64,000 bases of DNA from Guillardia theta CCMP2712. Lineage: Eukaryota; Protista; Cryptophyta. The notes below the pieces were generated by a model that saw only the letters and a program-made list of their open reading frames with translations, did no database searches and had not been told where the DNA came from. The DNA is taken from the NCBI RefSeq assembly GCF_000315625.1, contig NW_005434624.1, positions 53,414 to 117,413 on the forward strand. Direction: 5' to 3'. Position numbers and translations under genes: made by a program. Below, piece after piece: positions 12,698-51,406 of the stretch (positions are counted from its first letter, which is position 1; each line of letters begins with the position of its first letter).

Positions 12698-15154
12698 ATG
12701 AGTCGCAGAACAAGCTTGCCCTCGTCGCAATGGAATGCAGATTACATCAAGCAGGGGAACAAGTTCTGCCCCGTGCCTGAGTGGCAGGTCGTGGAGAGTT
12801 TGATGAAGATGCTTGAGGCTCCGGTTGCTCGCAATCGCAAGGACGTGCAGGATGGTCTGATGACGGAGAGGGACGCTGAGAGCGCCAAGGAGCTCGCCAA
12901 GGTGACTTCCAAGATCGGAATCCTCTCCATGCTCCCCCTCTACTCCCGCGTGCAGCTCTGCAAGACCATGAACTTGTCCAAGTACCGGAGTGACGCCAGC
13001 CCTCTCTTCACGCAGCACGAGTACAGCTCGCTCTACTTCATCTGCCTCGTCGGCTCCATCGAATGTACCTCAGCTGTTCTCGCCATGTCTGCCGCCGGCC
13101 TCACGCTCCTGGCAGGCGTTGGACTCATCCATCAGGGCACCGAGCATGAGACGCGCTGGAGCAGGAGGGTGGCGGCTGGCAAAGATCTCTGGGCAGAGCT
13201 TGGTGATGCTGCGAGGAGACGTTTAGCTGCATGACTAGCGTGCAGGGCTGGGAGGAGATCATGGCTGCGTCTGCTCGGGCTATCCTCAGCCCATACGCAC
13301 AGGCTCGGTCCCCGCGACCACTGAGATCGCCAAGAGGTGAAGGAGTGGGAGAAGAGCATGCGGAGGTGATGCTGACTTGCATGGGAGGATGATGAAGCGC
13401 GTGTCCGGGTTCTGCTTCGTCCTCTCCATCTCCATGTCAGAGCTTCTTCGACAAATCAACGTCGACCCCTTCTACCTCAAGGCGATCCAGCTGGGCCTGC
13501 AGGAGGTGGCAGGCTGCTCGTCGCTCTTGGCGTCACTGACTGCTCGTAGATGGACGTGTTTGCTCACTGGGATGAACGAGACCTCCAGGTGACGCAGCTC
13601 GAGAGCTGCCGGTCAGACTCTGACGCGGGCGTGGCAGACGCTCTCCTTTCAGTTCCGTCGGCAGAAATTTCAGAGGGAGGAGGTGATAGTCTGCCGAGGC
13701 TCCAAGTCTCGCAGGTTCTACGTGGTCATCCGGGGCAAGGTGGAGCTCTCCTGGCCGCGAGCTGAGGCCCTCACGTACGGTCGCTTCCACCTGGAGCAGG
13801 CGATCAAGCAGGTCGTGTCTTCGGGGTCGCCTGACTCCTGCTTCGGCGAGGAGTCCATCTTGTCCGCTGCCTCCTCAGGTTGCGAGTACGACGCTAGGGT
13901 GATCACCAACTACGGATGCGAGCTGCTGTGGGCGGAGGCGAGTGAAGTGAAGGAGCTGCTTGCGGGGGAGACGCTTCTGAACCTCGCTGTCTTGTACAAG
14001 GCTAGGAAAGAGTCGCTCTCCTCGGGCCAGGCCACCGTCATGGCGGAGATGACGTGTGCTGCTGCGAGCGAGGAGTCAAAGAGTCCTGTGAGAGGGCGGG
14101 AGAAGAAGGGCTACTTCCTAAAGTTCGACCCCAAACCAGTGGACCCGGAGACCCCTGAACGAGGGCTGAGCCGATCCCTCGCTGACTTCTCCTCCCCCTC
14201 TGATACAGTGAGAGACCTCAAGCCACGCAGCCACGGGCTCTCTCTGACGCAGCGACAGTCAGGTGCCAAGTCGACAGGAGAAGAGATGCTGAGATCGAGC
14301 ACCAAGCGGATACTCTTCACGAGTTTTGCGAGTGAGGAAGGGGAGGACGAGAGTGCTGGAAGGGGCGAAGGCGGAGACTCACTTCCAGCTCTCATCGACC
14401 TGGACCGGATCTACCGCAACAGAGAAACAAACATGCACATGCCCATCGAAGTCAAGGAGTCGAGGCTGACGCTCTACTACGCGTTGAACAAGAAGTTTGT
14501 CAGTCAGATGCTGCGAACTCTAGAGAAGAAGCGGAACATCGAGCGAGACTACAACCGCAAGGTCCTTGCACCCTCCGCTCCCAGGTGACGGCCAAAACAT
14601 CGAGCGAGACTACAACCGCAAGGTCCTTGCACCCTCCGCTCCCAGGTGACGGCCAGACGGTGAAGGCTGGTCGGGGTGCCAGGGCAGGGGCAGGGGCAGA
14701 GGCAGGGACAGCAGTCTATCTCTGGGTTCGTGAGCAGCGGCCGATGAGAAGGACTGGAGGACGTGAGGATGTGAAGCTTGAAATGTCAGCAGCACCAGAG
14801 CGAGAGGTTCTGACACATGCTGAGGGCACTGAACCTAGCAGGGGCAGTGGCATTGGCAGGGGCAGTGGCAGGGGCAGGGGCAGGGGCAGGGGCAGGGGCA
14901 GGGGCAGGGGCAGTGGCAGTGGCAGTGGCAGGGGCAGTGGCAGGGGCAGTGGCAGGGGCAGGGGCATGATAAATCACAGAAACAACAAGGCAAGAAGATC
15001 GATCATGTGCGAGTTGAGCACATGCCAGACCTCGGAGGTCAGTCAAAGAGACAGGGAGATCGGGATGTCTCGGTACTCGCAGCTCGAGCTGATGGCAGTA
15101 GAGGAGGGTGGGGGACGTGAAGATGTTGATCAACAAGTTTATTGTACTGAATGA
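12698..15154 (+). CDS. Cyclic-nucleotide-binding domain protein (two cNMP-like domains), multi-exon
   Basis: LFTQHEYSSLYFICLVGSIEC and VIVCRGSKSRRFYVVIRGKVEL...CFGEESILS...YDARVITNYGCELLW match the cNMP fold pattern. 3' exons beyond 14588 are uncertain. Confidence 0.7.
14837..14965 (+). repeat. (GGCAGG/GGCAGT)n hexamer repeat
   Basis: About 20 tandem units. Confidence 0.9.
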
Positions 15155-15209: not shown

Positions 15210-18200
15210 TTATGAGGCGTCGCCTGGCAAGGTGACTTCCTCGGGTGCTGGCGTGAACGTGTCTCCCTGGTACTGTTGGGCCTCACTTGTGGCCGGCACA
15301 GTGGCAGGCGCAGGAGCTGAGTCGCTCATGATCGGCGTGCGGCATGTCGGGCAGCGCTTCCACGTGGGCTTGACCGGAGCCTTGCAGTTGACGCACTCGG
15401 CAGAGAAACCCATCACATCCTGCTGCGACATGCTCGACACGAACGCCTGCGCTGGCGCCGACTCCACCGTCTCCCCGGGCCTTTGAATCTTCGCTTTACA
15501 TCCTGGACACCTGGGCCAGCTTAGCTTGACGGGAGCTGAACACTGATGGCAAATGCCGCCGAAGCCTTGCTGCTCCACCAGAGTCTGAGCAGACACAGCC
15601 GACACAGAATCAACTCCAGCTGCAGCCTCGCTGATCTCCGGGTGATCGTATCCGAGAGTGGCGACCAGGTCGCGGCCCTCGGGTCGAGGAGCCTGCGCGA
15701 TGTCCGTGCGACAGTTGGGACAGCGCGGCCAAGTTGACTTGACTGGGTTGTTGCAAGCCGAGCAGTTGATCCAACTCTCCGGGAGCGCAACAGCGGAGGT
15801 GTCGAACGTGCTCGCTTGAGGAATGACGCTCGATCGCAGGGCAGAGCTGTCGTAAACGGGTTCGGAAGGCGCCTCTGCTTCGACGTCTGCCTTCTTCTTG
15901 CCTGCCTGAGCCTGCTGGAGGCGAGCGTAGTAAGCGAGCACCAGCATACCGATGAAGAAGATCGGAACTATGATGGCAGCTGCAATCACTCCCGCCTTGC
16001 TGCCGGACCCGAGCTTCGAGGGAACCACAACAATGTTCGGATCTTTGGTGAACATTGCTGCGTACGTCGAGAAGTGCTGCAAGGTGGCCGAGGCCCTTCC
16101 TGTAGCGTCAGGTCCGCTGCCGTCGACCACAACCCATCGCTCAAGGTCGCGATCGAACGTGAACACTTTGAGCACTTCATCTGCCTGGGCCTGCTGGCTC
16201 ACGCTCAGGCCCAGCACAGCTCCCTTGACGCTGATGCCATCCGGCTGCAGATCTACGACATCTCCTGCGAAGCGAACAACATCGGCGACTTGCATGGCAG
16301 GAGGGAGATCCTTGCTGTCGTACAGATCTCCCGAGACCGTTGTTGGTCCGCTAAGAGCGAAGGGAGGTAAGTAGAGGCTCGCGCCACTTGAAAGAGAGAA
16401 GGTGTAAGAGATGCTGATGTCGCTGATGTAGAATTCGAAGCTGTCCAAGGGTGTCAAAACAGTCGAGCAGTCAAGCCCAAAGTAATATCGATTGCACATA
16501 CAGTATCCTGCCTCCGCTTGGCAGCTTCCATGACCAAGGCATGTGTACTGGGCTGAGCAATAACGGCTGCACTTGGCTCCTTCCTTGGGGTTGTAAAAGT
16601 TTGCAACGCACGTACACACACTGGGTGTAGAGTTGCTGTTCTTGCAAACGAAGTTCGATTCGATAGTACAAGAACTGCTACAGCCATCTCCGCTCTTCGT
16701 GTTTCCGTCGTCACATCCCTCCACGGGGATGTAAATTCCGTCACCACAGTTGCTGACGCACTTGTTGTTGACTTTCACATACCCATATGCACAATCACAC
16801 CTGTATGACCCTTCGGTGTTGACGCAGACTTCGGATACTCTATTGCAAGTGTCGGACTGATTCTTGCACTCATCAATGTCTCTACAATACCCTGATTCAG
16901 AGGCAGAGGCGTTGTACAGCTCGTAACCAGGTGGGCACGTTGGCCAGTCAAGACACATCGAGTTCCCTGTCGTGTTCTTGTACTTGCCATATGGGCATGG
17001 CAAGCAATCGGCTCCGGAGGGGTAGGTGCCTGGTCCACAGGATGATCCACAGACCGCCGATCCCGCCACCGAACTTGTTCCGTTGGGACAAGGAGTACAT
17101 ACGGAGTCCCAACTGCCACGATCAGGCTTGAATGTTCCTGCCGCGCATGGGCTGCAAATGCCTACTCCGTCCACGGTGTTGGAGACGCAGCCAGAACGGT
17201 ACTGTCCAGGTGCGCATGGAGCACAGCAAATTGAGTATGTTCCGGATCCGGGGTCCCTCCAGCAATCAGCACCAGGCTCCACTTGACAGGATGCGGAGCA
17301 GCCGTCCAAGGACACAAGGTTGCCATCGTCGCACGTCTCGTTTTGGCTAATCTTCTTGTCTCCGCAGTCCGCAAGCGCAGGGTCTAACGCTGCGAAAAAC
17401 TCGGTGAGGTGATTACAACGGCAGGTCACAGACGTGTCCGATCTGTCAAAGACTATGCATCCCTGAAACCTGAATTGTTTGGTTGTGGGATCCAAGAAAG
17501 CGCATGACAACTTGTTTTTCCACCCAGCAACACCAAGAGCTGTGACGAGTTGAGGGTCTACAGGGATGACAACTGTGAAAGGAGAAGTAAGGTCCGATAC
17601 TGTTGCTTGAGTGCTTGAGTCTTGAGTAGCAAGCATAAGCGCGACCGAGGATTGGGACAACAAGTCGATGCTAGACACTTTGTTCAAGTTCGAGCGAACT
17701 CCTTGAAACATGATGATCTTGTAGACATTGCTAGGCAAAGGGGAGAGAGATTGAGGGACCGTGAAATACCCAGTACCGGCAGCAGCAACTTGCAACGAAG
17801 TAGCAACTAGAGGAAAATTTGCCTTGGTTGTGGTCAAGTTGTGCAAGGAATTTCCAGTGAAGGTGTATAGTTCTCCTGCTGCAATCACTTTTGCATATCC
17901 TTCGGCTATCGGGAACGTGCTCGCGTGCCTGTCGATGAGAAACTGAATGAGTTGCGACTCGGAGAGCACTACAGGCTCAGAAGAATAAGGGCAGACCGAG
18001 AGGGCGCCTGAAATCGATCCCATGAAGATCGCAAAGTTTTGATTCATTGTGGTGCTGAAGGAATCTCTACTCATATCCGTTGAAGATGCAGCCTTTGCCA
18101 CTGAGACCGCACCATTGAACGTCGTATTTGAGATCAGACAAGGTGTTGGGATAGCACTAGCTCCAGCTTGAATGGTCTCTTCAGCATAGTCTTTTGTCAG

Positions 18201-21200
18201 GGCCGCATATGTAACAGCATACGAGAGGTTGAGAATGAGATCTTGTCGGTACTTGGCCTCATCCGTTGCCTGCAGTGTTGTACCAGCGATGGTGTTCCCG
18301 AGGTTTGACACAAGTTGGTTCACCGTGGACGCGCTCTTGAGCTGGTAAGCATCATTCAAAGCGGTCATTCCGTTCCCTATGTCATCTTGCACCGCAAGCA
18401 ATCGACGACGACCAGCGCTGCTCGATATAGTGATCATAGTGGATCCAGCATCGGCTGCGGCACCAAGAGAATCCAGAACCTGCGCAATCGTCAACGAGAA
18501 AATATGAAAAGCATGAAGTAGTACCTTGGCTGTGACAACGACTTGTCCTCGTGGTAATACCATATCCAGGTAGTTGATTGGTGACGGGCTGAAATCAAGC
18601 TTCTTCGCATTGATGGTGACGCCAAACATGAAGCTCAAGGGAAGATCGGCGTCAATCCAGTTAGAGCAAGTAGTTCTGAAGTAGTCCTTGTAGGCGATTC
18701 CAGTCGTCTCGCATGTCGTTGACGTTGATACTTTACATGTCTGGCACGTTCCTGAGCTTGGCGGACGATTGACCAGCAGGTTGATGGAAGATGAGCCAAC
18801 TCGACCTTGATTGTCCGTTACTCTGAGCGTGAACTGATATTCGACCCCAGCAGTGAGGATTGGCGAGCTTGACAGGTCCAAACGCAGCACAAAGTTGATT
18901 TTATTGCTTCCGAGGGGAACAAGATTTTGAGACAAGGTGGTGAAGGAAATTCCGTTATTCGCGGTCCAGGAGTACTGACTGATCTGACTAGCAGGCACGT
19001 CGATGACACCTCCGAGGTTGATTCTTGCGTCGGGGTTGATTTTACTCAACCCCAACTTTGCATCAAAAGGCATGTCTCTCGTTTGAATGCCAACAGAAGG
19101 AATTCTTGTAGAGACCATATACACGTTGACGCTGGATGAGGCAGGAATTTTGCCTGTTTTAGATACAGTGACAGTGAAAATGAAGTAGTTGGACCCTGTC
19201 GAGGTCAGTGTGTCTGCAGCAATCGTTAAGATTCGCGCTGTTTCAAGTGTGACTGCATTGCCATCTTTGGTCAGGCAAGGAAGTTGGGTTCCAGAGACCG
19301 TCTGCAGAACACAAGTCCATGCAAATTTCAGGAGGGCATCGGTCTTGCGCTCACTGAGGCGCAGATCAGGATCGTACGAACCGGAAGCATCCAGATTCAA
19401 CTGCGATAGAGTTGAAATCGTGATGGTAGTTCCTGATGCGATCTTTGAAAACAGAGGTGTGGCTTTGACGTTGATGTCTACACTCGCCGAAACTCTTTTA
19501 GAGATATCTCCATCCATCGACATAGTCAGCGAGACCTTATACTTTCCAGGCGCCTGCGTGCCTGGTTTGAGGTACATCTGCGATTTATCTGACACTTGAG
19601 TGCTAGTTGTGGTGTCCGACAAAACCCACGCGAAGCTAAGGGCACTCTTGGAAGTTTGACAGAGAGAGAACTTGGCTTCTCCTCGCAAGAGGATCGGGTC
19701 GTTCACAGAGTATGACGTACTCCCCTCTATCAAAACTGTTGGGATAGGTGAAGCTTGTTTCGTAAGAGTGAAAAACTTCGTATCAGATTGAACTCCAAGA
19801 AAGTCTGTGGCTTGAACTGAAATTTTATACTGAAAGTTCGTCTCCAGTAGCGCAGGAGTCCCAGCAGGCATCGAAATTTGGTTTGAAGTCAAGAACAGCA
19901 AGATTGAGTTGAGACTGTCGCTGTTGCTGCTGCTCCAGGTGTACTTGAGAGGTCGAGGGGAGGCGATGGAGAAGACAATTCTCAATGCTGAGCATGAGTC
20001 AATGACAGCTGGTCCTGTCAGAATTCCTGGACCAGGAACAAGCTGAACTTTGGGTGGTTCTATCCGGAGAGGTTGTGTCAGAGGGACAGAAAACGAGGAA
20101 ATAAGATTCTCCGACTTCAAGAAATTGTTCTTCAAATTCATAAAGTCGCCAGGCACGATCGTTGCACTTTTACCAAGCTTGATAATCAAACGTTTGGTTG
20201 TCTGCCAGACACACGTGTAACCAGATCCAAGCCCTGTGACATCTAGGAATGAACAGTCAGCTGAAAGAGACTTGCCATTGGTCTGCTGGTCGAATTCCAC
20301 TTCGATAGCATCTCCCGCCGATTGAAAGCGCGCGCTCAAGAGAAGAGGAGCGAAGTAGATGTCATAGGATCCTGTGTAGAAGAGCGACGGGGAGCTCAAG
20401 TATGAGACCTTGATTGGGACGCTTGCCTTCCCTTCGATCACTGATAGTTCCGATCTAGTGAAGGTTGGAAGGGAGGCAACAATAACGTCCAATTGCGTGT
20501 AGCTTGCACTGGTGTACCAAGAGACCGAGCGAGGTTCCTTCGCTCCAAACTCGACCTTCAAATTGCTCAGCATATCTGTATTTGCAGGATTCACCCCAGG
20601 CAGGTACATGTACACAGATCCAACTGCTGGGCCTTGGCAGGTCACAGAGGCTAACGCCCCAGCTTGGGGAGTTCGGCAATATACTATGAGTTGCTGATCG
20701 TAAACGAGGACTGAGAAATCAAGTGTGGAGAAAGCAGATACTACAATGTTTCCGGATAGAGTTCCTGTCTTATCGAAAGGCTTCGGTTGTATCTGAAAGA
20801 CATATGACGACGATGAGGAGAAGACATTAAAAATGTCACTGCCGGAAAAATATGTTCCTTGTATTGACATCTGGAAACTTTGATCTATCACAGCATTTTC
20901 AAGTGTGACAGTCAAAATTCCACCGCCGCGGAGTGGCAAGGTACAATCTGTGTCAGATGATCGGATGGGTTCTGATCCGTCGCTACACAAACCTCCAGAA
21001 ATACAAATTTTGCCTGGTACACATGTGGGACAGTAATCCATGGCAACAAGTGCAGCAGACGGTTGGTAATATTCAAACACCAAGCCACTGATCGCCCTTC
21101 TTTGTTCCCTCACGTAGACTTGATCTGCTGTGAACCCCGCTGGTACCTCTCCTCGACCACGAAAGGTAACGGTCAACGAGACGGACCCTGCGCTGTGGGG

Positions 21201-24200
21201 GGGAACAGACGATGAAATGTAGAGTCCATCCGACCATCTCACAGCATCCAAAACCGCGCACTTCACGTTGTCACAGACCGTACTTCCGAATTGAACTTGC
21301 ACTTCACTGATGTCTTGAATGGCTGGCGCCTTGGAGATCCATATGCCCACGGCGTTCTGCTGGTCGGATAGACAGATGGAACAAGCTCCTACGGTGCCAC
21401 CCACAGTAGCCGAAGAGGGAACAACATTGACAAACGTTGGAGGATCGTAGATCTCGAAAGACAAAGTTTCATAGCTTGTCTCCCCCAAGTTGTTTGCTGA
21501 CAAGATCTTGACCTACGCAAATTAGAATCAGTACTACATCTACGTGAAGAAGTCAAACTCACCTGAACATAGCCAACCTTGAGGCCAAGAGGAACGACTG
21601 CAGTCACGTTCGAGATTGTACCAGCTTCGTTGTCAGCTATCTTGGTGACGACGGCGTTTATTCCTGAGAAAGTAACCGTGACAGTTGTTGGCTGTAAGAA
21701 AAGATCCCAGAACACCGTGAAAACGACAGAACCCCCGCCGAGCTGGCTTGAATCCACTGGAGTAGGGTGAGCAGGAGTACGGACAACAAGGAAATCGAAT
21801 GGCATGGGGTCCATGAATGAATCTATGATATACACTGAAGCATTCAGCAACCTTGAAGGTTGGCCAAAGAGTCGCAAGTTGCCAACATTAAACGTAATCA
21901 CGTCCATGCCCGAACTAGCTGAAGTGGTATGACTGATGGCAGTGACCACTGACTCTCCGAACTGCCCCTGAATTCTCGCAAGACTGTAATCTTTTGTTTG
22001 ATCCTTGGGGAAGTAACGGATGTAGACGTTGACGGTGATGACGTCAACAACGTTCCCTACCGAGGGCGACACCAGATCGACTTTGGGCGCATTGAGGTCT
22101 ATAAGCTTCACTGCGAATGAAGCACATTTAGCTGTCGGTCCAGATCCTGCACAAACCCTGAAAGTTGTTGAAAGGGCTGATTCTGAGGTAGGCAGTGTCA
22201 AAGAAAACTGTACGTTCGACAAAGGACAACTGGGATCCGCAGAGTCTGTGCTCAAGACGGTTGCCCCTTGCGGTTGTACTGATGTCGTACTAGAGACAGT
22301 AGGAGCTAAGGTTCCAAGATAGCAGATTGCAGCTTGAAACGAGGTTGTAGTTCCTTTCCTCATCTCCAAGGGATAGATTGACCTTGCAACAGGTTCTGGG
22401 TAGACAGACAGAGTGAAAGGAAACCTTCCAGCCCTGGTGGTAGGAAAGAGACTGTAGCCAACCGATATATTGTAATTTCCCGCTTGTGGTACCGCAGATA
22501 CTTGAAATGTGCAGAGAGTGGAGGTTGCGTCGGACTTGATAATCGATGTGGCGGTTATCAGTGAGTTTGCTACACCATCAATTGATAAGTACAACTTGCT
22601 AAGTGCGTCTTGACTGGTCAAAGGAGCAGGAACGACAGGAATGTTGCCAATTTCAACCTTGAACGACAAGCTCTGCTCGTTGGTGAAGGCTTGCTTCGGG
22701 CTGGCAAACAAGATGAGAGCAGGCCCGCTGGAAAAAACCAATAAAGTCAAAAAATCAGAAACGAAACATCAGCCATACCTCAAAGGAGTCTTGTACAAGA
22801 ATGAAAAGGAAGTGGACTTCGTCAGTCTGCCATAAGCAAAGGAGAGCTGAACATCGGTAGAAGTGGCTCCCATGGGCGCCTGAGGCATCGTGAAGTTCAT
22901 CTCAACATTCGAATTCAAGCCATCACTGGTCAGGTACTTGAACCCAACGATCTTGGCGTAAGAAGGAAACGATGCTGACCCAACCATAATTGTGACATCT
23001 TGCTGTGACAGAGCAGGAAATCCAAATAGAATCGCACGCACACTCGTGCCGCCACTCGTGAGCCCTGTAGTAGGCTCGACAACGGACAGGAATGGTGTGG
23101 GAACTTGAGATCGATCCAGACAGAATTGAAGGTTGCAAGTAGCAGAGTCCGCTAGTGCTTGGATTTTGAGCAAGTCAGGGAACTTGGAACCGCAAGCTTC
23201 ATCGTAGTCGCAAGGGGCCTGGAATTCGAAATCAAAATCAACAATCTTCACCGAGTTTTGGTAGACACTGGCCACAATGCTCCAGAAGATTGAAACAGCT
23301 GGAACTGTGACAGAGATTTTGGCCAAGGCGATTGAACTAGCAGAGGTTATGTCAGCACCGTCTGCTGACCAAATGTCGGTATTTTGCACTTGCACTACAG
23401 TTCCACCAAAGTTGACAGTGACTGGAAGGTTGTAATTGAATGGTTTGAAATTGCTGATTGTGAGAATAATGTTGGAACCACCCGTGTTGAGCGAAGTCGA
23501 TTTCGAAATTGAAACCAGTCTAGGAACCGTACAGTCAATCACTCGGAACGCAGCAGTTGCGGTCAAAGAGCCACTCGTGACAACAATATTGTCACTGGAA
23601 ATAACCTTAATAGCCTCGGTGATTGTCACTTGTAGAATTGTTAACAATGTTGTGTTATCATACTTCGTGACAACAAAGGGAAGGTTCTTTGTGTAGAACA
23701 CACTGCTGACTGCATTCGGGTCAAGATTCTTCACGTAGACATATTGGACAACATTAGTGCAGGTCGTGCAAGCACAAATCTCAGTGGGAGTTGGAGTTAC
23801 AATCTGCAATGCAACGGGATTGACAGCAAGTACGCTGAAACCAACTGCCCCGGCAGTTCCAAGTCGTCTTGGATACATCGTGCCTGAAACATTTCCAGCA
23901 GAAGGCAAGGGAGGCACAACGAATGACACAATGGTCTCACTACAGACACTTGAGACCAAAGAAATATTTTGGGCTGGTGTGGATCCGAGATATACCAAAA
24001 TCTCTGAAGAGACTGTCACAACAGGAAAGTTCGATATAACGATGTTGATTGTTTGTCCGCCCGTCGTCTGCACTTGAGTGCTTGAAATAGATTTCAGGAA
24101 GACTGAAGCTGTCAAGTAGTTGAACAAAAACTCGACATACTTGCGAGGGAATTGGAATGGTGTCAATTTGACATAATAAACTCCTTGAGAAACTGCAGGT

Positions 24201-27200
24201 GACAAGTATTGCAAGTCAGTCTGCGATGAATACGAAGAAACCAACTGCACATTGTCACTCAGGACAAAAATGGAGTCGCCGATGTTGATGAGAACGTCCT
24301 GCTTCTGATTCAAGACTGGAAAGAGAGAAATCTGCACGGTCACGACGAAACCTCCGCAAATCGTCCCCGAAGTTGGCAGTGCCTTCAAAATTGAAGGAAG
24401 CAACTCGTCATAGTATGTCACGGTGTACGATGCCGTCAGACCGGAAGGAAAAGTGATTTCGCCAGTAGCAGTGTCATATTGATTGGAGCTAGGAATCAAC
24501 AGTCTCACAGTGGCCTGTCCGGTATTGAAGTCTCCTGAAAAGTCCAGGACAGGCACTTCTACACCCATCAGAGTAGCAGAAACTGAGCTGAAGGTCTGGA
24601 AGATTTGTTCAATCGTCACAGTGACCGGAGTTGTTGAGTATTTCTTGACGAATGCACCGGATAGATCGCCAACAACCGACGAGACACGCGGGGCGGAAGC
24701 GTCGATGTACTGGAACCCGTTGGATCCTGATGCAAGAGCGTACCTGTTTGGAAAGTCCCTGTGTGCAAGAAACACTGTCGCATATCCAGCAACAATTTCT
24801 GGCACGCAACAAGGGGTACGAAGCCTGATCTTATAACCTTGGATCAGAGACTTGTCAAGAGTTGGATTCACTTGCGAATACGAGATCAGCTGGCACGAGA
24901 GCTCAGTGATAGTCGCGATAATGTCACTCAGTCCATTCTCAATTGCAGCAAACTGATTAATTGTCACTTCGATTTCTGTTTCCGTATTTGTAAATCCTTG
25001 AGCTGGTTTCAGAGATGTGATGTCTGGATTCGGAGCCTTGACGTAGGAAAAGGAAGAAGGGAACTCAATTACATCCCCAGTTATGTTAATCTTCAGGGTT
25101 GGCTTAACAGTAGAAGGATCCAGTACTGTTGGAATGCGAAGCTTGATTTGACCTGTATACTTATTTGCAGTACTCGACTGAGTGAATGTCGCAGAAGTGG
25201 CTGTTGTCATTGTATTGCCGAAATAGATCAAAAAAACACTTGCAGACTGAGATGTGATCGAGCTTGGCAAGTTCTGTACAGTTACTTTCATTGAAACTTT
25301 GCCATCTGTAAAGTATGACGTGGGATCAAACGATGAAATGTACATTTTATCATTTGGTAAGATTTGTACAGTGAAGGTAACAGACTTCACAGCCAAAAGA
25401 GTGCCATCATTCTTGTATGAGATTACAAATGAAACGTCAAACGACTGGTTGTAGGGGATTGTTGGAGCTGTTAACAGGATATCGAAGTCAGTAAGTTTGG
25501 TCGTCGATTGGAGCACCTGCTGGATTGTTGCTGTCAGTCCAGGAACATCCATGGAGGAAACCGTCTTCACGATATCAAAATCGTTTGCTGTGAGCCCTGC
25601 CGTGCCAACATTCGAGAGAGACACCATAACTACTTTCGTATCTTGAGTGGTTGCAAAGACAACCTGCGGCGGATCAACGAAATTGAGGGTGGTCCTTAAA
25701 GTGTTTGTGACGGAAAAGCTTGCTGAGCCAACCTGTGACTCCCTTCCAATAGCATATACTGAGATGGTAACTTGGGTCGGACTTGTTGCCGAGACATCAG
25801 GCGTCAAGAATGAAACGATTGTAGTTTCAAAACTGGAAGAGACTGTCAGCTGCGATGAACTCAATACAACGCTCCCAAAGGAAACTTTCAAGTCACTTGC
25901 ACCCGAAATTCTCCTGAAGTTTGTCAAGAGGCATGTCACTGGAACATTTCCTGTGTCTTTCCCTTGAGAGGGTTGAACCGTCATGACTGGATCACCTGTT
26001 GGAATTGCGACATACTGAATGTTAAAACTGATCGCATCGGCCAGACGGACTATGCTCAATGAAACAACGGCAGAACCCGGAGCAAACGGTGGAGCTTGAA
26101 AGGTGACAGTGGAAAGCTGCAGGTTGCTATCATAAGATATGCTGTATGTCTGGACTATCGTTGAAGTCGAGGTAGCAGAGGATGAGGATTGAATTTGAAT
26201 AGTCAAGTCAGATTTAACGACAGTCGCGTCACCGAAGTTGAGGATAGTGACAGTGATGGAATCTAAACCGTCAGTGTACACGTTTTCTGTTGTCTGACTC
26301 TGAATAGCAGGAGGATTTGGATCAACAACAGTGAATGCAAATGAAGCAACCAATGATGGAAGAACGATGTTCGAAATATTGATCGTTCGCAACCCAGGCA
26401 GGATGTTTGGCACCGTCAAAGACTGTTGAAATATGTCAGTGATCATCAGCAACTTTACAGCTTATGTACCATCTTTGTTGAAGTGGAATCACTTTTCAGC
26501 AGAGTCAAGTCTGACGTTGGCAGTTGTTGAGCGCTCATTGTCACATTCAGCTCTGTGACCGAGTACACCAATTGAAAGTTCTTGAGAGTAACTTGAACTT
26601 TGGTATATGGCAGACCTCTTACCGGGATGAAATCAGCTTGCACGTCACCTGTAGGATCAGGAAGATATTGTAATGTTTTGTACAAGTTGTAGGAAGGTTG
26701 TCCCAGGTTGATTGTGACGTCAAATAACCCTGTTGTCGTTGCTGAGCGACTTCGGAAGAAGAGAATCGCACTTCCCATCTGGAGTTGGGAAAGTTGCGCA
26801 ATAGTACTGTTGAAACAATGTCACTCCTTCTTGCTCTACACAGTAAAAATCAAATTGTACCTGTTGATTACTGTGACGTCTTCTTGACTTGCTCCGCTAA
26901 GAAAGTTGGAAATAAAATCGGTTCCTAAGAATTGTTCTTGCAGATTTGGGACTAGCCAATCTGAGTACTTCAAGAAACTGACTTTGTTGTCGTCAACTTT
27001 CGTGTTGCCTATATTGACTGTAATGGAAATGCTGCCCTCAGGGATCGTGAATCCACATACTATCATTGCACCCCCTTGCAAGCGACTCACAGTCGGACTC
27101 ATACTGATGAGAAATGGCTTTGCATAATCAACGAAATTCAACTTCAAGGTGCTGGTGACCGATGATTGCTGATTCTGGTAAATGCTGTTGAAAGCTGTCA

Positions 27201-30200
27201 CAGTAATGCTGTACGATCCGGCATCCAAGGTAGTAGGAGTGGAAATTTGAATTTCCACTTGACAGCTGAAGAGGTCTGTGCACTCCGTATACGAAATTAC
27301 TGTTGCAAGCTCTTGGCCGACAGTGACCTGAAAGCTTCCAGTCTGGGTGGGAAGATTTGATACGCGAAACTTGACGATCGTCGACTTGGTGATGTCGATG
27401 CCAATGCTCGCTGCTGTCTGATTTAGAACTTGAATGAAATTATCGGGAAGTTGCAGCTGAGGAACACTGGACAGTCAAAGTCAGGGAAACAACCAATCTC
27501 TATCAGAAGAAGATTTACCTCAAGTAGCGGAAACCGTTAGCTAACTCCAATGTTGATGGTACGCTTCCAGTCTGGTAGTTGATAACCAGTTTGACAACGA
27601 CATACCCAGCAGAGCTTGACGAAGGAGTATTGCCTGCGACTGTCAATTTGTCTGAGTTTTGTGAGAATGAAACCGCAAGGCATTCCACGTTGTTCAAGTA
27701 CATCTGGACCGAGCTGACAGTTTCCAGCAATCCAATGGCAAGCACCGAAATAGCTGTACCTCCGCTGCTCAACCCGTACCCGGGAACCACGCTGGCGATG
27801 TACTGTTTTCTGAAGTTGAAGATCGGATCTGTCGTCAAAGGAAGCCGAGAACCCTGCAGGTAGAAACTGATTATAGCGACTCCTTGAGTAGCCAACAAAG
27901 GTGTTCTTGCTGTAATCCTTAGAGTACCCTCGACGTCAGGAGTGATATCGGTTACCGTACCCATACTAGAATTGAAATACACCTGGATTCATGTCATCTC
28001 AAAACGTTTACGATTGACCGATACCTGCAATGTACTTGAAGTTGCTTGGAAGAAGTTCAGCAGACCTGCCTTGTATCGAGTTTCACCATCACGAGGCTCC
28101 AAAATCGTAAAAGTGATCGTATTAATCTTGTCATTTGAACCTGAGACGGGGTACGAGTACTGTACACTGGCAGCCTGTTTCATCAAATGTCAGCTTCAGC
28201 CGCATAAGAATATGTAATCTTTCCTGATACTGAAAAAAGGAGAGTGAGAAGGAAACGATTTTGGTTGGTGAGCCATAGTTTGACCTGATCTCCGCAATTG
28301 CTTGACCCTGTTGATACATGGGATAGTATCTGTTCGAAGCGATGGGAAATAGGGGAGGATCAAAAATAAATTGTGTCGTAATATCAACAGCTTCTGGGTC
28401 ACTCAGAAATGCAGTTGATGTTCTTACAGTCCTTGATGATACAAAGAGCTGAGAAATTACGGACCTTGACCCAAGAGTGACATTTATGGGAAGATAGGTT
28501 GTGGAGGGTGCGAGTGGCAAGTTCTCAACCGTTATTGCAATGTTGTTTTGTACGTTTCCATCGATCCAGACATAACTCTGACCATCCCACTGAGCAACAC
28601 GCAGGGGAAACTTTTGATCAGCAGGGTATGAGATATACGCTCTTAGTTTCCACGCCTTCCTCACGAAACTTTTCAAATCCATAAATCCAATTCCAGCAGA
28701 ATTTTGAGCTTGAACAAGAATGTAATACACTGTTCCCTCAAGCAGCGTGTTCAGCTCTGGGATCTTGTATGTGCATAAACCATTGCAGTCAGGTGATTTA
28801 GAAAATTGCTGGACTGTGCATGTGCTGCCAGAATTTACCTCCGGACAAGTCGAAAGTTTGATACTGTAATCAAGCAAAATGTTTTCGAACACACCTAGCC
28901 CATATCCATAGTCTGATGGAGCATTCCAGCTAATCAAAAACCCATCGCTTGCAGCTGTTACACTCATGTCTCTCACAGGCCCTGGTTTGCTCATGGCTCT
29001 TACACTCGCAAATTCACTGAAGGGTCCTTCATCGATGTCATTGATCGCCAATAGTCTTCCCCTGACACTCTGACCTGCCATGATTGGCTCTGGAAGGGTG
29101 CCTAAAAGCTTATCGGCCCTCGAGTTGCATTCACAGATATGTGCAGCATTCCATATAACGATGGGGAAGATGTCTCCATCTGTGCAATTAACCCAACCTG
29201 GTGCTATGTATGGGACTGACCATTGCCCATCCGCACCGTAGCGCACTACTCCCTCACAGTAGCAGATTTGACCTTGATTGGCACATTTCGTGAACGTTCC
29301 CCCAACAGCAGTGTTGAAATCGTACGACACAATGCTCTCTGCAGTCGTGATATTGTTTCCATAGTACACCGACGGGTTTGCAAAAATTTGCAACAAATAT
29401 GCTTTTAAACTCTTTTGCGACGTAGTATCTCCTGTATCACTTGGCCGACTCCAGGTCATTCGCACAGTAAGACTGTTTCTGTTCGAGATGGCTGGAGTAG
29501 GAGGCTGTCCTGGTGGACCAGTGAATCGAGTTGCATTGACTCGCGGAGAAGAACCCTTTCCTGCCAAGTTGATTGCCCAAACACTGACTCTGTAAATTGT
29601 ACCTTTGACCAAACTCCCTTGGAACACGAAACCCTTTGTTCTCGCGGAGATGTTCTTGTGATATAAAGATTGTGTACAAGACATTAAATTGTAATCTATG
29701 CTTCCGCTCTGTTGCACAACAACGCCCGAGCAGCTTCCCTCTATCAGAACTTCATACTGTACAACATAGTTCCTCGACCCGCTGATTGCCCATTGTTGAG
29801 CTTGTTCAGAATCTTGCCATGCAATGCCCATACTTCGCGAAGGTAAAGATTGCAACGACACATATTCAGGTGGACCCGGTACGACTGGTGATTCTGCGTT
29901 TCCGATAATGCCGCATTCTTCAAGGCTGCATTGCTCTTTCTGACAGATCTCTCGGTTCAATTTCAAATAGCTTGGTTTTGTACAGCCTGAACTTGTCAGG
30001 CAAGTGTAGTAATTTCGAAGGCAAAAACCTGCACACACAAATGAATTTGTGCCCTGGTTTTGCAAAACTATGCCCTGAGACACAGCTTCTGCTCGGATAC
30101 CCTCGCATTCTGCGTACTGAGCAGAACATATCTCAGACTTGCGTTGGCAGAAATACTCATTATCTTGAAGTCCGCACGACGCTGCGTCACAACCTTCGTA

Positions 30201-32923
30201 GGCACAAAGCTGGGCATAAGACTGCATGCTACTCGTGTCGGCACATCCTCCAGTCTCCACGCATTCAACGTATGATTTGGAGCAAGCACAATTCACTTTG
30301 AGATAACACATGCCCGTTGCCTCATTATAAATGCACCCTGGCAAGCCTCCAGCCCACGGATTATTGCAAACATCTCTACCTCGCTGTCCCATGTCCAGTT
30401 TTGTCAAATAATGGCTGTAACAGACATCGTTGGAGAAGTCTATCGTGCTTTCAAGACAGGATCGCAATTTGCCGACACACTTGAACCCAGTTTGATTGCA
30501 ACTTGTGTAGGTAGATGGTAATCCACATTCAAGTGCGGTGCAACCAAAATCAGCACACAATTGAGCATGCTTCTGAATCCATGTTGCATCGCTTACACAA
30601 CCCGCAGTGTTCAAACATTCATATTGATTCTTGGCACAATCGCATTTGTTTGCTCCTGAGAATTCGCATTGGATGTACTGGTTGTTGCATTGCGCCGCTA
30701 AGTAACTGCATTTCCTTCCACATACACCACATTCATCGGGGGTGCAACCATTAGTCATGCAAATATCAGACATCTCCTGCAAAAAGCTGTTGGAGAATTC
30801 ACAACCATAGTGATCAAGACATTGAATCAATTCACTAGTGCAGGTACAATCTCCTTTCATTCTGCGGCATTCCAAATATTTTTGACCACATGTGAGCTTT
30901 ACCAGTGAACTACAAAAGACATTCTTCACACCCGGCAAAAACCCGCAGTCACTGTCAGGACAACCATCCAAAACGCAATGTTCGTAGAGGAAGGTACGAT
31001 CAGAATCCTGTAAACAAGTACTATCTTCCAAACAAGAAGAGTATGCACGAGAGCACTCACAACGGTTATGGTCATAGGCAGTATAACCAATCGGTGTATC
31101 ATAAAGGAACGTATCACGCCGCAATCTGAGAACGACAGTCCTAGATTCCGAAGTGCAGCTTTCAAATGAGATGAATGGAAAGTATTCGAGAGCATCGTTT
31201 AGGGTAATGCTGGGTCCCCTTCCGGAAACTGGATCTGAAATAGCGGAGCTAGAAATCCATTGGTTCTCCGTCCCAAACCAAACCTTACCATTGGAACCGT
31301 CGATAGCTACCCTGATAGTCACGGTATTTGCACCAGTATTGGCGAAATTAGAATACTGGGCTGATGAAACTTGATTGATATTTGCTAGTCTCTTAATGAA
31401 TCCAACCTGGGCACACGGCGGCACGAGGACTTCAAAATATATTCTACCCTGCCAGATTGGCTTCAAAATTGTCACTGAGGAATACAGAGACGGGTTGATT
31501 GGGATATTGCTTGCAGCAAGTTGATTACCTGGACTTGAAGTGGCCAATTCTACTGTGATATTGCCATAAACATTCTCCGAGCAATGGTAAAAATCCGATG
31601 CACAACGCATTGAGGTAGTGTTGCAGGACGCGGTGTTAAGGCCGCACTCCTCTGCGGTACAACCTTCCAGCACACACATGCTTTCGGCGGTATAACCTGA
31701 AGCTGACGATGCAACTTTCACGTTACAATTTGCATCTGTCATACATTGCAAAAACGATTTTGTGCATGTGCATGATCCTTGAGATTCTAACATGCATGTA
31801 GAGAAAGTTTGTGCACACACAATCGCTGTCGTATTGCAGTCGACCGTGCTGAGACCACACTGCACAGCCGTGCAACCACTTGATCGACACACTTCGCGAT
31901 GAGCTGACAAATCAGCTGCAGAATTTGCGCACCCCCAGCTCTGCATGCACTGATAGTATTCTCGAGCTCCAGCACACGTGTTGGAGTTTGGTGCACAATA
32001 CATGCGATCAATATCTAAAATATACAACAAACAATTATTGCAGAGCGCCGAGTTGGAGGAGGCGTAATCAAATTTTGTAGGCGGACGCAAAGGATTATTG
32101 AGACATTCAGTCGTGGATAAGTCACACATTCCCTCCACTTTGGCCAACAGGTGTATGCATATCTGGCTGTTCACGCTGTACATAAATGCTGTGCATCCCT
32201 GGATTTTGTCACACTCCGCCGCACACTGTTCCGGGGTAGGAAAAACATAAAACTTTGAAGCAGCATTTGTGAAACTCCCGTAGAACGTAAAACCAGGTTG
32301 ATACCAGTATCCATTTCCCTGCATCAGTGTAAGAATGCAGCACCATCTAAACAGATAAAAAAGATATTGCGTACAGTCTTAGAGTTGTTCACGCATGTCT
32401 GAGTCCGACTTGTGTATGTAGGAATGTATCCTTGTTGAGTCTCGATCTGATTAGTCCACCTGTGAGAATCAAAATGAGACTCAGAAATGTGTGGAGGGGC
32501 GAGAGGATCAACAGCTGGAAACTACCTTTGGGCACATTGCTTTGCAGCATCGATGCAGGTCAGTGTAGAGTATCGGCACGATGTGCAGGAGTCGTATGCT
32601 TGGATGTAGCAACAACCAAAAAGACCTCCGAAGAAAGGGTCTTCACACTGTAATTGGCCGTAGTTGCCTTTTTGTCTGTAGTTCTTGTCGCAGCTGTCGA
32701 TGTACGAGATAGAGGAGCTTGCATTGCTAACATTGCTGCTTTTGTTCTGACCATAGTCTACACACCATCCGAGAATAGGTTTGATGACAATATCGTTCGT
32801 CCGGATTTCGTACGAAGATTTATCCTCCGCCACATCGGAGAGTTGCTGTGCACCTTTGGATGCGTAACCTTGGCACAAGTAGCATGCCAAAACAGCAAAC
32901 AGAATGAGATGGCGAAATTCCAT
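15210..32923 (-). CDS. Giant (~5,730 aa) single-pass polycystin-1/adhesion-like receptor: SP, Cys-rich repeats, PAN, SPRY-like, FN3, IPT/TIG repeats, REJ, GAIN/GPS, Myxococcus-type Cys repeats, TNFR/EGF, ZU5-like, TM, 3 zinc ribbons
   Basis: Consecutive minus-strand ORFs are joined in frame by 10 short introns (32460-32525, 32319-32374, 28175-28223, 27983-28024, 27467-27518, 26807-26860, 26423-26469, 22728-22778, 21513-21562, 18480-18524), giving 17,202 nt. Motifs: signal peptide MEFRHLILFAVLACYLCQGYA; REJ-like LDASGSYDPD, FAWTC, VNRPPSSGTC, CSNWIDADLPLSF; GPS CAFLD...GC...CRCNHLTEF; EGF-Ca DIDECK; TM AGVIAAAIIVPIFFIGMLVLAYY. Confidence 0.85.
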
Positions 32924-34798
32924 CTTCAACGATATAGTTTGACTCCTCGAGCACCTACTGCTTGCACCGTCACGGATCACGAACGGGTTGAGAGCATGAC
33001 AACACTTCGAGCCGGTAGGTACTTCTCAGAGATGCAACTAGAAGATGCGAGCAGGGACAGAGTTGTCGAAGCAGCTCAAGCACATCAACCCACAAGAAGT
33101 AGAATCCTGATCTCCACCCTCTCCCTCAGTTCCTCTCTCTCTCTCGCCGCCATTGTCGCCTCCATATCCCTCTGCCGCCTTCGGCTGTCGACCGTGACCC
33201 TCTGCGCGGCGTCCTCGAGAACTCACCCAAATGTTTCACACTCCATTCAAATTTGGAGATACCCCTATACCCCTAATTTCAATGTTCTTATTACCCGTAC
33301 AAAAAAATATTTTCCGAAAACAATTTATAATTACGGATCAATTTGGGGCCCAGTTCTCATGCAGGCCATCTTGCCCTACGTTGACCCTCGGGTACCCTCA
33401 AAAGTGACATAACCCTACCCTATCTTGAATCTATCCACCCCTTATTTTCTCTTACATACTACCCCTCTCCGTCCATCCTCCACCCACCCCGGACGGCTCT
33501 TTTCAACCTTCGCTCTCCGAACAGTTATCCAACGTTCCTCACAACCACCCACCCGTGGGTTGATCTGATATTTATTTTCCCTACCCCTCACCAAGAGCAA
33601 ATTATCCTTACTACCCCCGTCTTCTTCTCAATCTTTTCAATCCACCCCTTCGATTCATACGAAAAATTCCCATTCTACCGGGTCATGGAGGCTACTTCAT
33701 CACCCCTACCGTGAGATTTCCCGGATTGGCCACCCCTACCTTGGTAGTTAAATTTTTGTACCCCCACCTCTATTTCCTCGCTGTCTTGTCAAACTCGTGT
33801 GATAACGGATAGTTTTTACTTGTTACCACCCACCCCCCCTCTCCTCAGGCTCGTTGGATAAGGAGTCCGCACTCACTGAGTCACTGAGCCCACCTCGCCT
33901 GCTCCACCCTCCTTCCCTTGCCCCCGTCGTTAGGCTCAGTTACCGGGGTAGGGGTCATGGTGAGGCTTCAGGCTTCAAGGTGACTACAGCGCCGGGGTCC
34001 GACCCCTTCCGATTCACATGATTTCAGTCAATTCAGCCTCACAGAGTCACCGTCAAGCCTTTCCAAACCCGACCGTCACGCCCAGTCGGAACTTCAAGGC
34101 TGCGACGGTCGGCCCGCTGAACGGTCTTGCCTGCGGCAGTTGACTCCTGACCAGTGGCGCTGAGACGGTTGAACCGTTTCTCAGCGCCACTGATTACGGT
34201 ACGGTACGGCAGTACCGACCGCCGTCGGTAATCATGATCAGCGCGCCGCGGCCTGCCTCAGTTGACAGTGAACCGGGCGGGCCGACTCTGTCAGTACGGT
34301 CGGCGGCGGCACCGCGGGCCAGGGGCCGCCCGACTCAGCCTGGCACTGTGGTCGGGCTCGCCGCCTCCGCCCCGGGGACTCGCCGGATCAGTGACTCCCA
34401 GTCCGGCTCACAATGACACTGAGTGACTGAAGTTTATTATTGAAGGCGGCTTGCAGTGCCGCGGCGGTGCCGGCCACTCAGACTGTCACGCCGATGATTG
34501 AACGGTTGAGGCTCGCACTGATCGCCGCCGACCGGGTGACCGGGTCAAAACTTGTTGTATTCGGATACCCTGAGCTGCCGCAGTGCAAGCCCAGTGGATC
34601 GGACCGCGCGACTGATGGCCGGGCGGCCCGGGGACTCGGACCGGGCTGACCAGGGTCCGATCACCGGGCCCGGCCCGCCGGGGTGCCGGACTCGACTCCA
34701 CCGGGCCAGGCCCGGCCGGCGGACCGGGCCGCCGGGCCTGCCCGGCCGGCGGACTCAGTGGACCGTACTACGGTAGCACTGCCAGTTGGAGTAACTTA

Positions 34799-35762: not shown

Positions 35763-36642
35763 ATGAGCACGACGCCTGCAACCAAACGCGAAGTAGCGGA
35801 GAGCAGTTTTGACCTTTTACATCATGCCATCGTCGACAAAATCTCCAGGTAATCCTGCAGAAAGTGTATCATGAACATTGATGGTTCGCGATCAGCTCAA
35901 ACAGAAATCATCCAGAGAAAGACCTGGAGATGATTGGCTACACCGTGGGCCAAAAGCTGGTTGAACGCTATGTGAAGGAGAAGTGTGTCGCCCACAAGCT
36001 TGAACTTGGCTGATCGCCTTCGATAGGCCAATTCTTGAAAATGACCTGGCTGTTATTACCTTCCTTTGCAAGGATTTTTGGACGGAAGTATACGGGAAAC
36101 AGGTTCTTCTACCTTGAAAGGATACCTTCGAGGGCAAAAGGCATGTTGTGAATCACCTGACAAGGATGTGGCAGATGGACAAATTGAGAACAAATCACAA
36201 AGGAGTTTTCGAGCTCCAGGTGCCTATTGCATCACCACCTCTCACTTTGTGAATGTGGACGAGTCTTAGGATCACAGATTCCGCGCGCTCCTGCGTGTAT
36301 CAGCGGTGAGCGTCTGTTCACCTGACCAGGACAAGGGCGTTCATGCTGATGTGATTTGTTACACGATGTAGGGAAGTCAAGTCAACTTGAGCGAGGCAGC
36401 GAAGAAGTGAATGAGAATGGTTGTGACATGAAGGGGATGATTGTCTTGGTTGCTGCAGGTACCTCATTCTGCCCTGTGGAATGATTCGAGGTTCTCTGTC
36501 CGCCTTGGGGCTTGAGGCTACAGGTAAGCAGTGATATCTCCTAGGGAGAACTTTGTTTTGATGAGGGGAGACAGTTAAAGCAGAGTCGTCGTCGCTTCCA
36601 GGTGTAATTTTTGTTGTACATGTGCATGAGTCTTCAAGGTAA
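35763..36642 (+). CDS. TRAPPC6: TRAPP complex subunit 6 (Trs33/TRAPPC6), multi-exon
   Basis: Spliced: REVAESSFDLLH...LEMIGYTVGQKLVER...VITFLCKDFWTEVYGKQMDKLRTNHKGVFELQDHRFR...YLILPCGMIRGSLSALG, the Bet3/Trs33 family signature. Confidence 0.9.
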
Positions 36643-37056
36643 GATGTTCCCTTTCCATCATTCATCTGCCACACGAGAGTTTATTTCCTTTCTAAAATGG
36701 ATGTGAAAGGAGGGCGAAGTGATGGGATCAAATCTGGATTATTTTTTCTTGGCTGTCACAGTGCTACATCTTGACAAGTGTTGTCACGCAAGAAGATGAA
36801 AGTTACAAAATCACAGTTTAAAAAATCTAACACAATGGAGAATTCGTCTGCGTTTACAACAAGAGAAGCTGGTTCGCTCACTGGTATCGAACGAACCTCA
36901 TTCTCAGTGTTGCTCTGGTCCTCATATCATTCTTGATGCCTCAAACATAGCACTGGTCTTCTTCCGCTATCCAACTCACATCTGTTGTAGTCAGTCACTC
37001 TCCCCGTTCGCACATCAGCACAGCTCCCTCACCCTAAATATCCACCTGCACCTGGT

Positions 37057-37610
37057 TCATGATTGTATGGGAATCGAAGCAGTGAACAGGATCGTGATCA
37101 GGGTAACCAGCAGCACGCCAGAAAGCGCCTGGGGCACATCCATCACTCTACAGCATGTCATCACATCAGACATTGCACCAGCGGCCCGTAAGGCTCGTCG
37201 ACATACGCAGCATATGCTCCGGGCTCAATGGAACGAATGTTTCTCCTCCTCCAGAAGAACGTGTACACTGCAAGCGATCAACCAGCAAATTCGTCAAGAC
37301 TCCGCTTAACCCCAGAATCAGAGATGCATCTTACTTGCATAGAGAGAGAAGACAATCGAGCAGAGCACGAGAACAGTAGAAACTACAAGCATGGACGATC
37401 GATGCGCTCCCGGGGCATCTCGTCCACTGACAGCTGAGATCAAGGATGACACCGACCCCAGGGTAACACCCCTGCCACTCCCTGTCAAGACGAGCCCGAC
37501 ACCCTCCCATCCCATCAAACTTACATGTGCAGCCAGTGAATGTAATTTCGCTCGTTCGCAAAGAAGTCCTTGTGCAGTCGCATGGCGGGCGGCAGGGAAC
37601 TGTCCGACAT
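37057..37610 (-). CDS. VTC1: VTC1-like (DUF202) vacuolar transporter chaperone subunit, 4 exons
   Basis: Spliced: MSDSSLPPAMRLHKDFFANERNYIHWLHMGVTLGS...VLVLCSIVFSLYAMYTFFWRRRNIR...LSGVLLVTLITILF, matching the FFANERTFLxWL and YALxTYxWR motifs with three TM segments. Not captured as one ORF in the track. Confidence 0.8.

Positions 37611-51370: not shown

Positions 51371-51406
<36 letters not shown>

Follow-up and report, generated by a model that had tools for sequence, protein, structure and literature searches.

The window analysed here is a 64,000-nucleotide stretch of the genome of the cryptophyte Guillardia theta CCMP2712 (contig NW_005434624.1, positions 53,414 to 117,413), and a giant predicted gene occupies positions 15210-32923 of its minus strand. 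The coding sequence begins with an ATG at 32923, ends with a stop codon at 15210-15212, and comprises 8 exons that would encode a type I membrane protein of 5,701 amino acids. Following a long adhesive ectodomain, the predicted protein contains an REJ domain, a GAIN domain with its GPS motif, a cysteine-rich stalk, a ZU5-like domain, a single transmembrane (TM) helix and three zinc ribbons. The departure from the literature is the position of the GAIN domain, with the cysteine-rich stalk and a ZU5-type, autoproteolysis-like module lying between it and the membrane.

Joined across the 8 exons, the spliced coding sequence is 17,106 nt long and contains no internal stops. The stop-free stretches from which it is assembled are, in order from 33025 to 15213, of 167, 1,415, 157, 212, 121, 1,230, 459 and 2,100 codons, and they are connected by seven frame-keeping GT-AG introns of 47-179 nt. 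These are intron 1 (32525 to 32347, 179 nt), intron 2 (28140 to 27966, 175 nt), intron 3 (27518 to 27467, 52 nt), intron 4 (26860 to 26807, 54 nt), intron 5 (26469 to 26423, 47 nt), intron 6 (22778 to 22728, 51 nt) and intron 7 (21562 to 21513, 50 nt), all on the minus strand, as are the other features of the gene. The donor of intron 2 is the least certain of the seven, and a CTGAC/CTGAT-like branch site is found 10-15 nt 5' of the acceptor in four introns. Exon 1 (32526-32923) contains the signal peptide and an N-terminal cysteine-containing region, and exon 2 (28141-32346) contains the PAN, cysteine-rich, SPRY-like and fn3 regions. Exons 3 (27519-27965), 4 (26861-27466), 5 (26470-26806), 6 (22779-26422) and 7 (21563-22727) are given over to a TIG-like array, which ends in the start of exon 8. 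The initial annotation of this DNA had proposed one spliced frame of about 5,730 amino acids between 15210 and 32923; the stop-free model has the same start and stop and nearly the same length.

The same gene is already public as the Guillardia theta CCMP2712 hypothetical protein GUITHDRAFT_140920, with 5,421 amino acids. That protein is letter-identical to the new model over residues 1-134 and 1535-5701, and it agrees with the new model at junctions J3-J7 and at the J2 acceptor, departing from it solely by additional predicted introns in exon 2. The segments that it omits (residues 406-579, 615-656, 851-905 and 1440-1534) are in frame, and in alignments with three homologs their identities are 0.19-0.50, compared to 0.27-0.40 for control segments. 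Because the omitted segments align as the controls do, the longer model is probably right and the public model too short; the new model probably adds about 280 residues to GUITHDRAFT_140920, among them the greater part of the SPRY-like domain. Literature searches for REJ with Guillardia, for the GUITHDRAFT_140920 locus tag and for cryptophyte with polycystin returned nothing.

Homologs provide the main support for a single transcription unit. A Teleaulax amphioxeia transcriptome open reading frame (ORF; P0095), labelled 'complete' and 6,549 amino acids long, aligns to model residues 560-5263 in a single high-scoring segment pair, and aligns also at the N-terminus and the tail. Three intron-free metagenome ORFs of 6,170-7,944 amino acids (P0119, P0121 and P0125) show colinearity with the model along about 5,000 residues, and a 21.8-kb metagenome contig (L008) has TIG, REJ, cysteine-rich and ZU5/TM/DZR ORFs in the same order as here. 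Matches to the model are also found in a fragment from Rhodomonas salina and in one, 90% identical, from Hanusia phi. Some of the searches were less informative: the search with the GPS-to-tail region was dominated by bacterial DUF4215 and animal fibrillin cysteine-repeat matches and does not bear on architecture, and the REJ-GAIN homolog search yielded four proteins only, owing to its length window.

The opposing reading, that the interval holds several adjacent genes or a decaying pseudogene, draws on the difference between the models over the N-terminal 1,500 residues and on the RNA reads, which number two and include no splice joints (about 6% of one RNA run was covered). The other sequencing runs covering the stretch are genomic DNA, colinear with the introns and uninformative for splicing. 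The splicing model accordingly draws on signals in the sequence together with the public model and the orthologs. The 17.1-kb coding sequence is free of stops, however, its catalytic and cysteine residues are kept, and its colinearity with intron-free environmental ORFs and with the complete transcript ORF of another genus runs from one end to the other, which argues for one gene and leaves the opposing reading close to refuted. The possibility that the frame would break into several genes, left for checking by the initial annotation, is thus answered by the Teleaulax transcript, with the G. theta RNA contributing no joints. The ORF lengths and the colinear homology are far beyond chance; judged on these sequence comparisons, the interval from 32923 to 15210 is one real gene, and its predicted domain layout is conserved in cryptophytes.

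The ectodomain opens with a signal peptide recognised by inspection (32858-32923), a PAN domain (32148-32258; PAN_1, E 7e-6), cysteine-rich repeats in exon 2 (about 31569-32081 and 29889-31061), a SPRY-like segment (31044-31586) and fn3 domains (about 28686-29900; E 3.4e-9). The SPRY-like segment was identified by an embedding search in which 94 of 100 matches fell in SPRY clusters (score 0.94); it has no Pfam match in whole-exon or piecewise scans, and the assignment is a lead, not proof. The long region that follows (19656-28140) consists of about 2,700 amino acids of divergent, Ser/Thr-rich IPT/TIG-like β-domains, extending through exon 3 to the start of exon 8. One piece of this array scores above the TIG cutoff (26.9 bits) and four are sub-threshold (11-18.6 bits), and an iterative repeat hidden Markov model recovered 8 partial units only. 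Whole-exon Pfam scans missed the PAN domain and most TIG matches, and scanning in pieces recovered both. No match to the G8, PbH1 or C-type lectin domains was detected in the Pfam scan of the gene. The domain order originally proposed is therefore retained for the signal peptide, PAN, fn3, REJ, GAIN/GPS, stalk, ZU5-like, TM and ribbon portions, with SPRY resting on the embedding search and TIG mostly sub-threshold.

The REJ domain (18360-19643; residues 4225-4652) matches PF02010 with an E value of 1.9e-40 and 139 bits, and the match spans profile positions 13-436 of 452. The GAIN domain (17328-18395; residues 4641-4996) includes a GPS motif (17397-17507) that matches PF01825 at 26.6 bits (E 8.8e-6, cutoff 22.5), and within it lies the predicted cleavage triad H4969-L4970/T4971 (17403-17411), where the slash marks the candidate scissile bond. 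The four GPS cysteines and the H-L-T triad are invariant in all nine aligned orthologs and paralogs. An AlphaFold2 (AF2) model of the GAIN region, with a mean predicted local distance difference test score (pLDDT) of 65.8, consists of seven helices (subdomain A) followed by a β-domain (subdomain B), and its best PDB matches in Foldseek are all GAIN domains, from BAI3 (E 5.5e-6), BAI2, CELSR1 and latrophilin. The REJ and GAIN assignments made in the initial annotation are thus borne out by profile and by fold, as is the estimate of about 470 residues between the GPS and the membrane: T4971 is 472 residues from the start of the TM helix at residue 5443, with folded domains between. The strand that follows the GPS leads into a DUF4215 repeat ('IDP...CGDG'), the first element of a cysteine-rich stalk (16467-17351) composed of DUF4215, TNFR/ephrin-receptor-like cysteine repeats, EGF_CA, DUF4215 and EGF_2. 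The EGF regions of this stalk match fibrillin and CD97.

Beyond the stalk, in an extracellular and juxtamembrane position, is a ZU5-like β-sandwich (16026-16448; residues ~5290-5430). Pfam ZU5 is matched in 5 of 16 aligned homologs (best E 2.4e-4), and the alignment profile of the domain finds ankyrin ZU5 among PDB sequences with an E value of 0.0026. The AF2 model has a pLDDT of 86.9, and its top 13 Foldseek matches are ankyrin or UNC5b ZU5 domains, with E values down to 8e-5, followed by GAIN subdomain B and the NLRP1 FIIND. A search of the ESM-Atlas returns bacterial SpvB/Rhs-type ZU5, PIDD-like and UNC5 clusters, with root-mean-square deviations of 2.2-2.8 Å over about 135 residues. The model puts the candidate site H5414-F5415/S5416 (16068-16076; H129-F-S131 of the modelled piece) in the β-turn that links strand 123-129 to strand 132-138, the last two of the fold, and some 27 residues separate it from the sole TM helix. 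Ten of the 16 homologs have HFSxY. A ZU5 fold for this domain, with an H-x-S/T motif in the turn before the last strand, is well supported by profile and model alike, in agreement with the 'ZU5-like' call of the initial annotation. The turn between the last two strands is where GAIN, ZU5 and MAIN domains cleave (PMC3482391, PMC3210808, bioRxiv 10.64898/2026.05.12.724683).

The two candidate sites are not preserved equally among homologs, and their losses are complementary. Guillardia theta and two further sequences (P0075 and P0089) keep both, as HL(T/S) and HFS. The Teleaulax protein keeps the GPS HLT and has no histidine at the ZU5 site, and the three metagenome proteins P0119, P0121 and P0125 keep HFS and have degenerate GPS triads, without histidine and threonine. 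Every full-length or near-full-length homolog examined (about seven sequences) keeps at least one intact site.

The TM helix (15921-15989; residues 5443-5465) has a Kyte-Doolittle 19-mer mean of 2.92; elsewhere in the protein, a mean above 2 is reached by the signal peptide alone. It is followed by a cytoplasmic tail of 236 amino acids (15213-15920) with three zinc ribbons of identical 18-residue spacing (15711-15764, 15498-15551 and 15342-15395). The ribbon pattern, C-x2-C-x2-P-[VIL]-[KR]-x2-W-x-[RK]-C-P-x-C, is present in 31 of 31 copies from 13 homologs, and P7, W12 and P16 are invariant throughout. Full tails that could be read contain two to four ribbons, and two transcript or contig fragments contain one each. 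The DZR profile is sub-threshold here (22.4 bits) and exceeds the Pfam cutoff in several homologs, and the nearest Atlas clusters of the tail are of DZR/DZANK type (scores 0.82-0.86, which are leads only); no described domain with exactly this 18-residue signature was identified. Pfam finds no PLAT, PKD_channel or 7tm match in the gene, and the initial annotation was correct in reporting no channel, G-protein-coupled receptor (GPCR) or kinase module alongside the one TM helix. Downstream exons hiding an 11-TM core were also considered, and are ruled out by the orthologs (Teleaulax and metagenome ORFs), which end at the same tail.

Profile searches of the G. theta genome itself (87.1 Mb, 669 contigs) place the gene within a larger expansion. 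REJ is found at about 40 or more loci and PKD_channel (PKD2-like) at about 80, with 8 GPS matches and 8 PLAT matches, none of the latter at the locus of this gene. Classical PKD1-type genes, with REJ, PLAT and 11 TM segments, appear to be rare or absent in this genome, and REJ giants and PKD2-like channels both appear to be expanded. The REJ/GPS paralogs are of two kinds. In the first (L001, L003, L004 and L007), a C-x-C-F-H-L-T motif is followed about 30 residues later by a TM helix, with further TM helices in L001, L004 and L007 and one in the frame read for L003. The second, to which this gene, L002 and L005 belong, has C-A-C-N-H-L-T and a single TM helix 300-570 residues later, and L005 has a weak ZU5 match and an HFT motif.

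The ZU5-like domain is likewise not confined to this gene. Its profile detects 20 further genome loci, at least four of which are directly downstream of REJ loci (contigs C39, C35, C121 and C75). The loci fetched (L010-L028, on contigs C146, C82, C53, C100, C90, C194, C39, C21, C47, C147, C35, C121, C149, C186 and C75) number 19, and have HFS in 13 cases and SFS in three; the domain mostly ends HFS[GILSM][FY], and in most loci a Ser/Thr/Pro-rich linker and one TM helix follow. Contig C146 has three nearly identical copies. The predicted ZU5-like/HFS-linker-TM unit recurs as a cassette next to the membrane among the surface proteins of G. theta. It was the ZU5-like profile that detected these relatives; the tail region (ZU5-like domain, TM helix and ribbons) used as a single-sequence query of the same genome found no paralog.

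The neighbouring ORFs have no evident link to the giant gene. They include a RIH_assoc ORF of the IP3R/RyR channel type (60671-63844, minus strand), a nuclease with ERCC4 and EME1/MUS81 C-terminal domains (51157-53877, minus strand), an ORF with transketolase domains (43217-44359, minus strand) and one with a weak cNMP-binding domain (13683-14585, plus strand). The GC content of the gene body is 45-48% (window positions 18001-34000), compared to 52-60% for most of the other DNA in the window and 49% in one 2-kb bin (36001-38000); the lower value could reflect the codon or amino acid bias of Ser/Thr-rich repeats, or a different origin. A separate 2-kb bin (48001-50000) has a GC skew of -0.53 and an AT skew of -0.42, and is probably a low-complexity or repeat tract.

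Among known systems, the nearest in ectodomain layout are PKD1 and the sea-urchin SpREJ proteins, which combine REJ and GPS with 1-11 TM segments (PMC1934368). The giant ectodomain is shared with these proteins, as is the order of REJ and then GAIN with a canonical C-x-C-x-H-L-T GPS. However, recent literature limits GAIN domains to adhesion GPCRs and PKD1-like proteins (PMC11697300) and describes the GPS as always immediately before TM1 (PMC3321182), whereas here it is hundreds of residues from the membrane. Relative to this family, the G. theta protein also lacks a PLAT/LH2 domain of the kind that follows TM1, an 11-TM or channel-like core and a C-type lectin domain, and instead has the additional cysteine-rich stalk, ZU5-like module and zinc-ribbon tail. 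It has to be asked whether the protein might be one half of a 'split polycystin', a ligand-binding arm that works in trans with a PKD2-type channel and replaces the covalent 11-TM part of PKD1. The abundance of PKD_channel loci and the fact that REJ and GAIN form the core of the polycystin-1 ectodomain are compatible with such an arrangement, but it is improbable, given that the protein has neither PLAT nor the polycystin-1 TM core that contacts PKD2, and that no PKD_channel gene is present in the window, the nearest matches on the contig being tens to hundreds of kb away.

Adhesion GPCRs also have adhesion modules followed by a GAIN domain of the autoproteolytic type, and by analogy a non-covalent association of N-terminal and C-terminal fragments and their force-dependent separation might be expected here. 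Unlike adhesion GPCRs, the protein has a single TM helix and no 7TM domain, and since the strand after the GPS enters DUF4215 rather than a TM bundle, the tethered-agonist mechanism cannot apply at the GPS. The ZU5 domains of UNC5, PIDD1, ankyrin and the NLRP1-CARD8 FIIND have the same β-sandwich, with HFS corresponding to the self-cleavage β-turn of PIDD1 and FIIND (PMC3210808, PMC3482391). In contrast to the animal domains, which are cytoplasmic, this one is predicted to be extracellular, just outside the TM helix, with no UPA or death domain after it. Large surface proteins of bacteria were predicted by Zhang et al. to contain autoproteolytic ZU5 domains (PMC3482391), and the bacterial and archaeal MAIN domains, such as that of B. 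subtilis YfkN, cleave at HFS, stay associated and adjoin the surface anchor of a large adhesin or enzyme, with release by shear proposed (Brogan & Rudner 2026 preprint, bioRxiv 10.64898/2026.05.12.724683). The extracellular, HFS-bearing β-sandwich of the present protein agrees with MAIN domains in position, motif and fold class; the eukaryotic host, the TM anchor with its zinc-ribbon tail and the separate bona fide GAIN domain set it apart. By analogy, MAIN may be considered the closest functional precedent for the membrane-proximal module.

A further resemblance is to fibrocystin (PKHD1), a ciliary protein that is likewise giant and single-pass and has a signal peptide and an extended IPT/TIG array. 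Fibrocystin is not known to have REJ, GAIN, ZU5 or zinc-ribbon domains, and the G. theta protein, in turn, has no G8 or PbH1 match and only weak and partial TIG matches. The overall layout is unusual and conserved, yet built from known modules. The initial annotation had described a new class of receptor, and with respect to the position of the GAIN domain it does differ from what has been described. The term is nonetheless too strong, because the gene is already public as a hypothetical protein, because sea urchin already provides REJ and GPS proteins whose TM segments can be as few as one (PMC1934368), and because the gene belongs to an extensive cryptophyte expansion, with REJ at about 40 or more loci, a distal GPS in at least two other paralogs, and the cassette at about 20 loci. 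It is too strong also because the ciliary location, mechanosensing, ectodomain release and tail signalling that it presupposes are inferred.

On balance, the giant protein is interpreted as a self-cleaving, shear-releasable adhesion protein or mechanosensor, and not as a channel subunit or GPCR. GAIN, animal ZU5 and bacterial MAIN domains self-cleave, and their fragments remain non-covalently associated. In the proposed mechanism, the protein would be cleaved by itself at the GAIN site, the ZU5-like β-turn site or both in the secretory pathway, and the resulting fragments would stay together non-covalently. A pull on the ectodomain, whether from substrate, prey, a mate or flow, would then detach it, with a break at the membrane-proximal ZU5-like site or the distal GAIN site releasing the adhesin. 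The zinc-ribbon tail of the remaining stub may recruit a conserved cytoplasmic partner.

Several considerations weigh against this interpretation. Cleavage, shedding, ciliary location, mechanosensing and signalling by the tail are inferred. An intact HxS/T motif is no guarantee of cleavage, as some GAIN and ZU5 domains remain uncleaved. The absence of the ZU5-site histidine in Teleaulax, and of the GPS histidine and threonine in three metagenome homologs, means that neither site is individually essential, and the pattern in which at least one site is kept comes from a small sample of about seven sequences. The GAIN model is of moderate confidence only, with TM-scores (a measure of fold similarity) of about 0.4 alongside its pLDDT of 65.8, and the SPRY and most of the TIG assignments are below Pfam thresholds. 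DZR-type ribbons are, to our knowledge, functionally uncharacterised, and the ribbons of this tail have no known partner. Finally, the RNA support for the gene is limited to the two reads, neither with a splice joint.

The most serious competing view is that the protein is a purely structural adhesin or surface coat (of the periplast or flagellar surface, or as a mucilage anchor), in which the TM helix and tail would serve for anchoring and traffic only and the motifs for maturation or turnover, with no signalling. Adhesion-type modules make up the ectodomain, which accounts for 95% of the protein; the ZU5-like cassette is also found at the end of about 20 other surface proteins, whose short tails are unrelated; and the role proposed for the bacterial MAIN proteins is protein release and not signalling (bioRxiv 10.64898/2026.05.12.724683). 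This view is considered less likely, though by no means negligible, as the invariance of the ribbon motif in distant homologs argues for a specific intracellular interaction. There is a slim chance, smaller than that of a split polycystin, that the protein serves as a receptor for gamete or cell recognition, by analogy with the sea-urchin REJ proteins, and that its expression is confined to a rare stage of the life cycle. REJ proteins of the sea-urchin type act in sperm-egg recognition (PMC1934368, PMC9265791), an REJ/GPS protein is specific to male gametes in the brown alga Ectocarpus (PMC4700764), and expression is near zero in the sampled culture RNA. However, a single run of low depth carries little evidential weight, the present data include no sexual cycle or stage-specific expression of the gene, and the C-type lectin domains typical of SpREJ were not found in the Pfam scan of the gene.

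A broader version of the self-cleaving adhesin or mechanosensor may be put forward more tentatively, and is rather unlikely to hold in full. The cryptophyte HF/S-linker-TM unit, as a self-cleaving extracellular cassette of ZU5/MAIN type, could provide dozens of surface proteins with a general, force-gated means of release or activation; in this protein it would be placed in series with a true GAIN domain, giving a mechanosensor with two breakpoints and a signalling stub. If that were true, the stub left once the ectodomain had come off at the ZU5 site would carry a newly exposed N-terminus, and its conserved triple zinc-ribbon tail could signal, for example after intramembrane cleavage. The module would be a eukaryotic counterpart of the bacterial MAIN system, and the protein an evolutionary bridge, with GAIN-type mechanosensing that predates, and is independent of, coupling to 7TM or 11-TM units.

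The literature on adhesion GPCRs and polycystins treats the GAIN domain as juxtamembrane, and in this protein that slot is filled by a homologous ZU5-type module with a like motif. Taken with the 2026 report on MAIN domains, this suggests that autoproteolytic β-sandwiches may be ancient and general 'weak links' of surface proteins that are not specific to GPCRs. With two candidate sites, natural single-site variants among its homologs and a set of about 20 paralogous cassettes within a single alga that can be cultured, this protein would offer a testable system in which to ask what role such modules have without an attached channel or GPCR.

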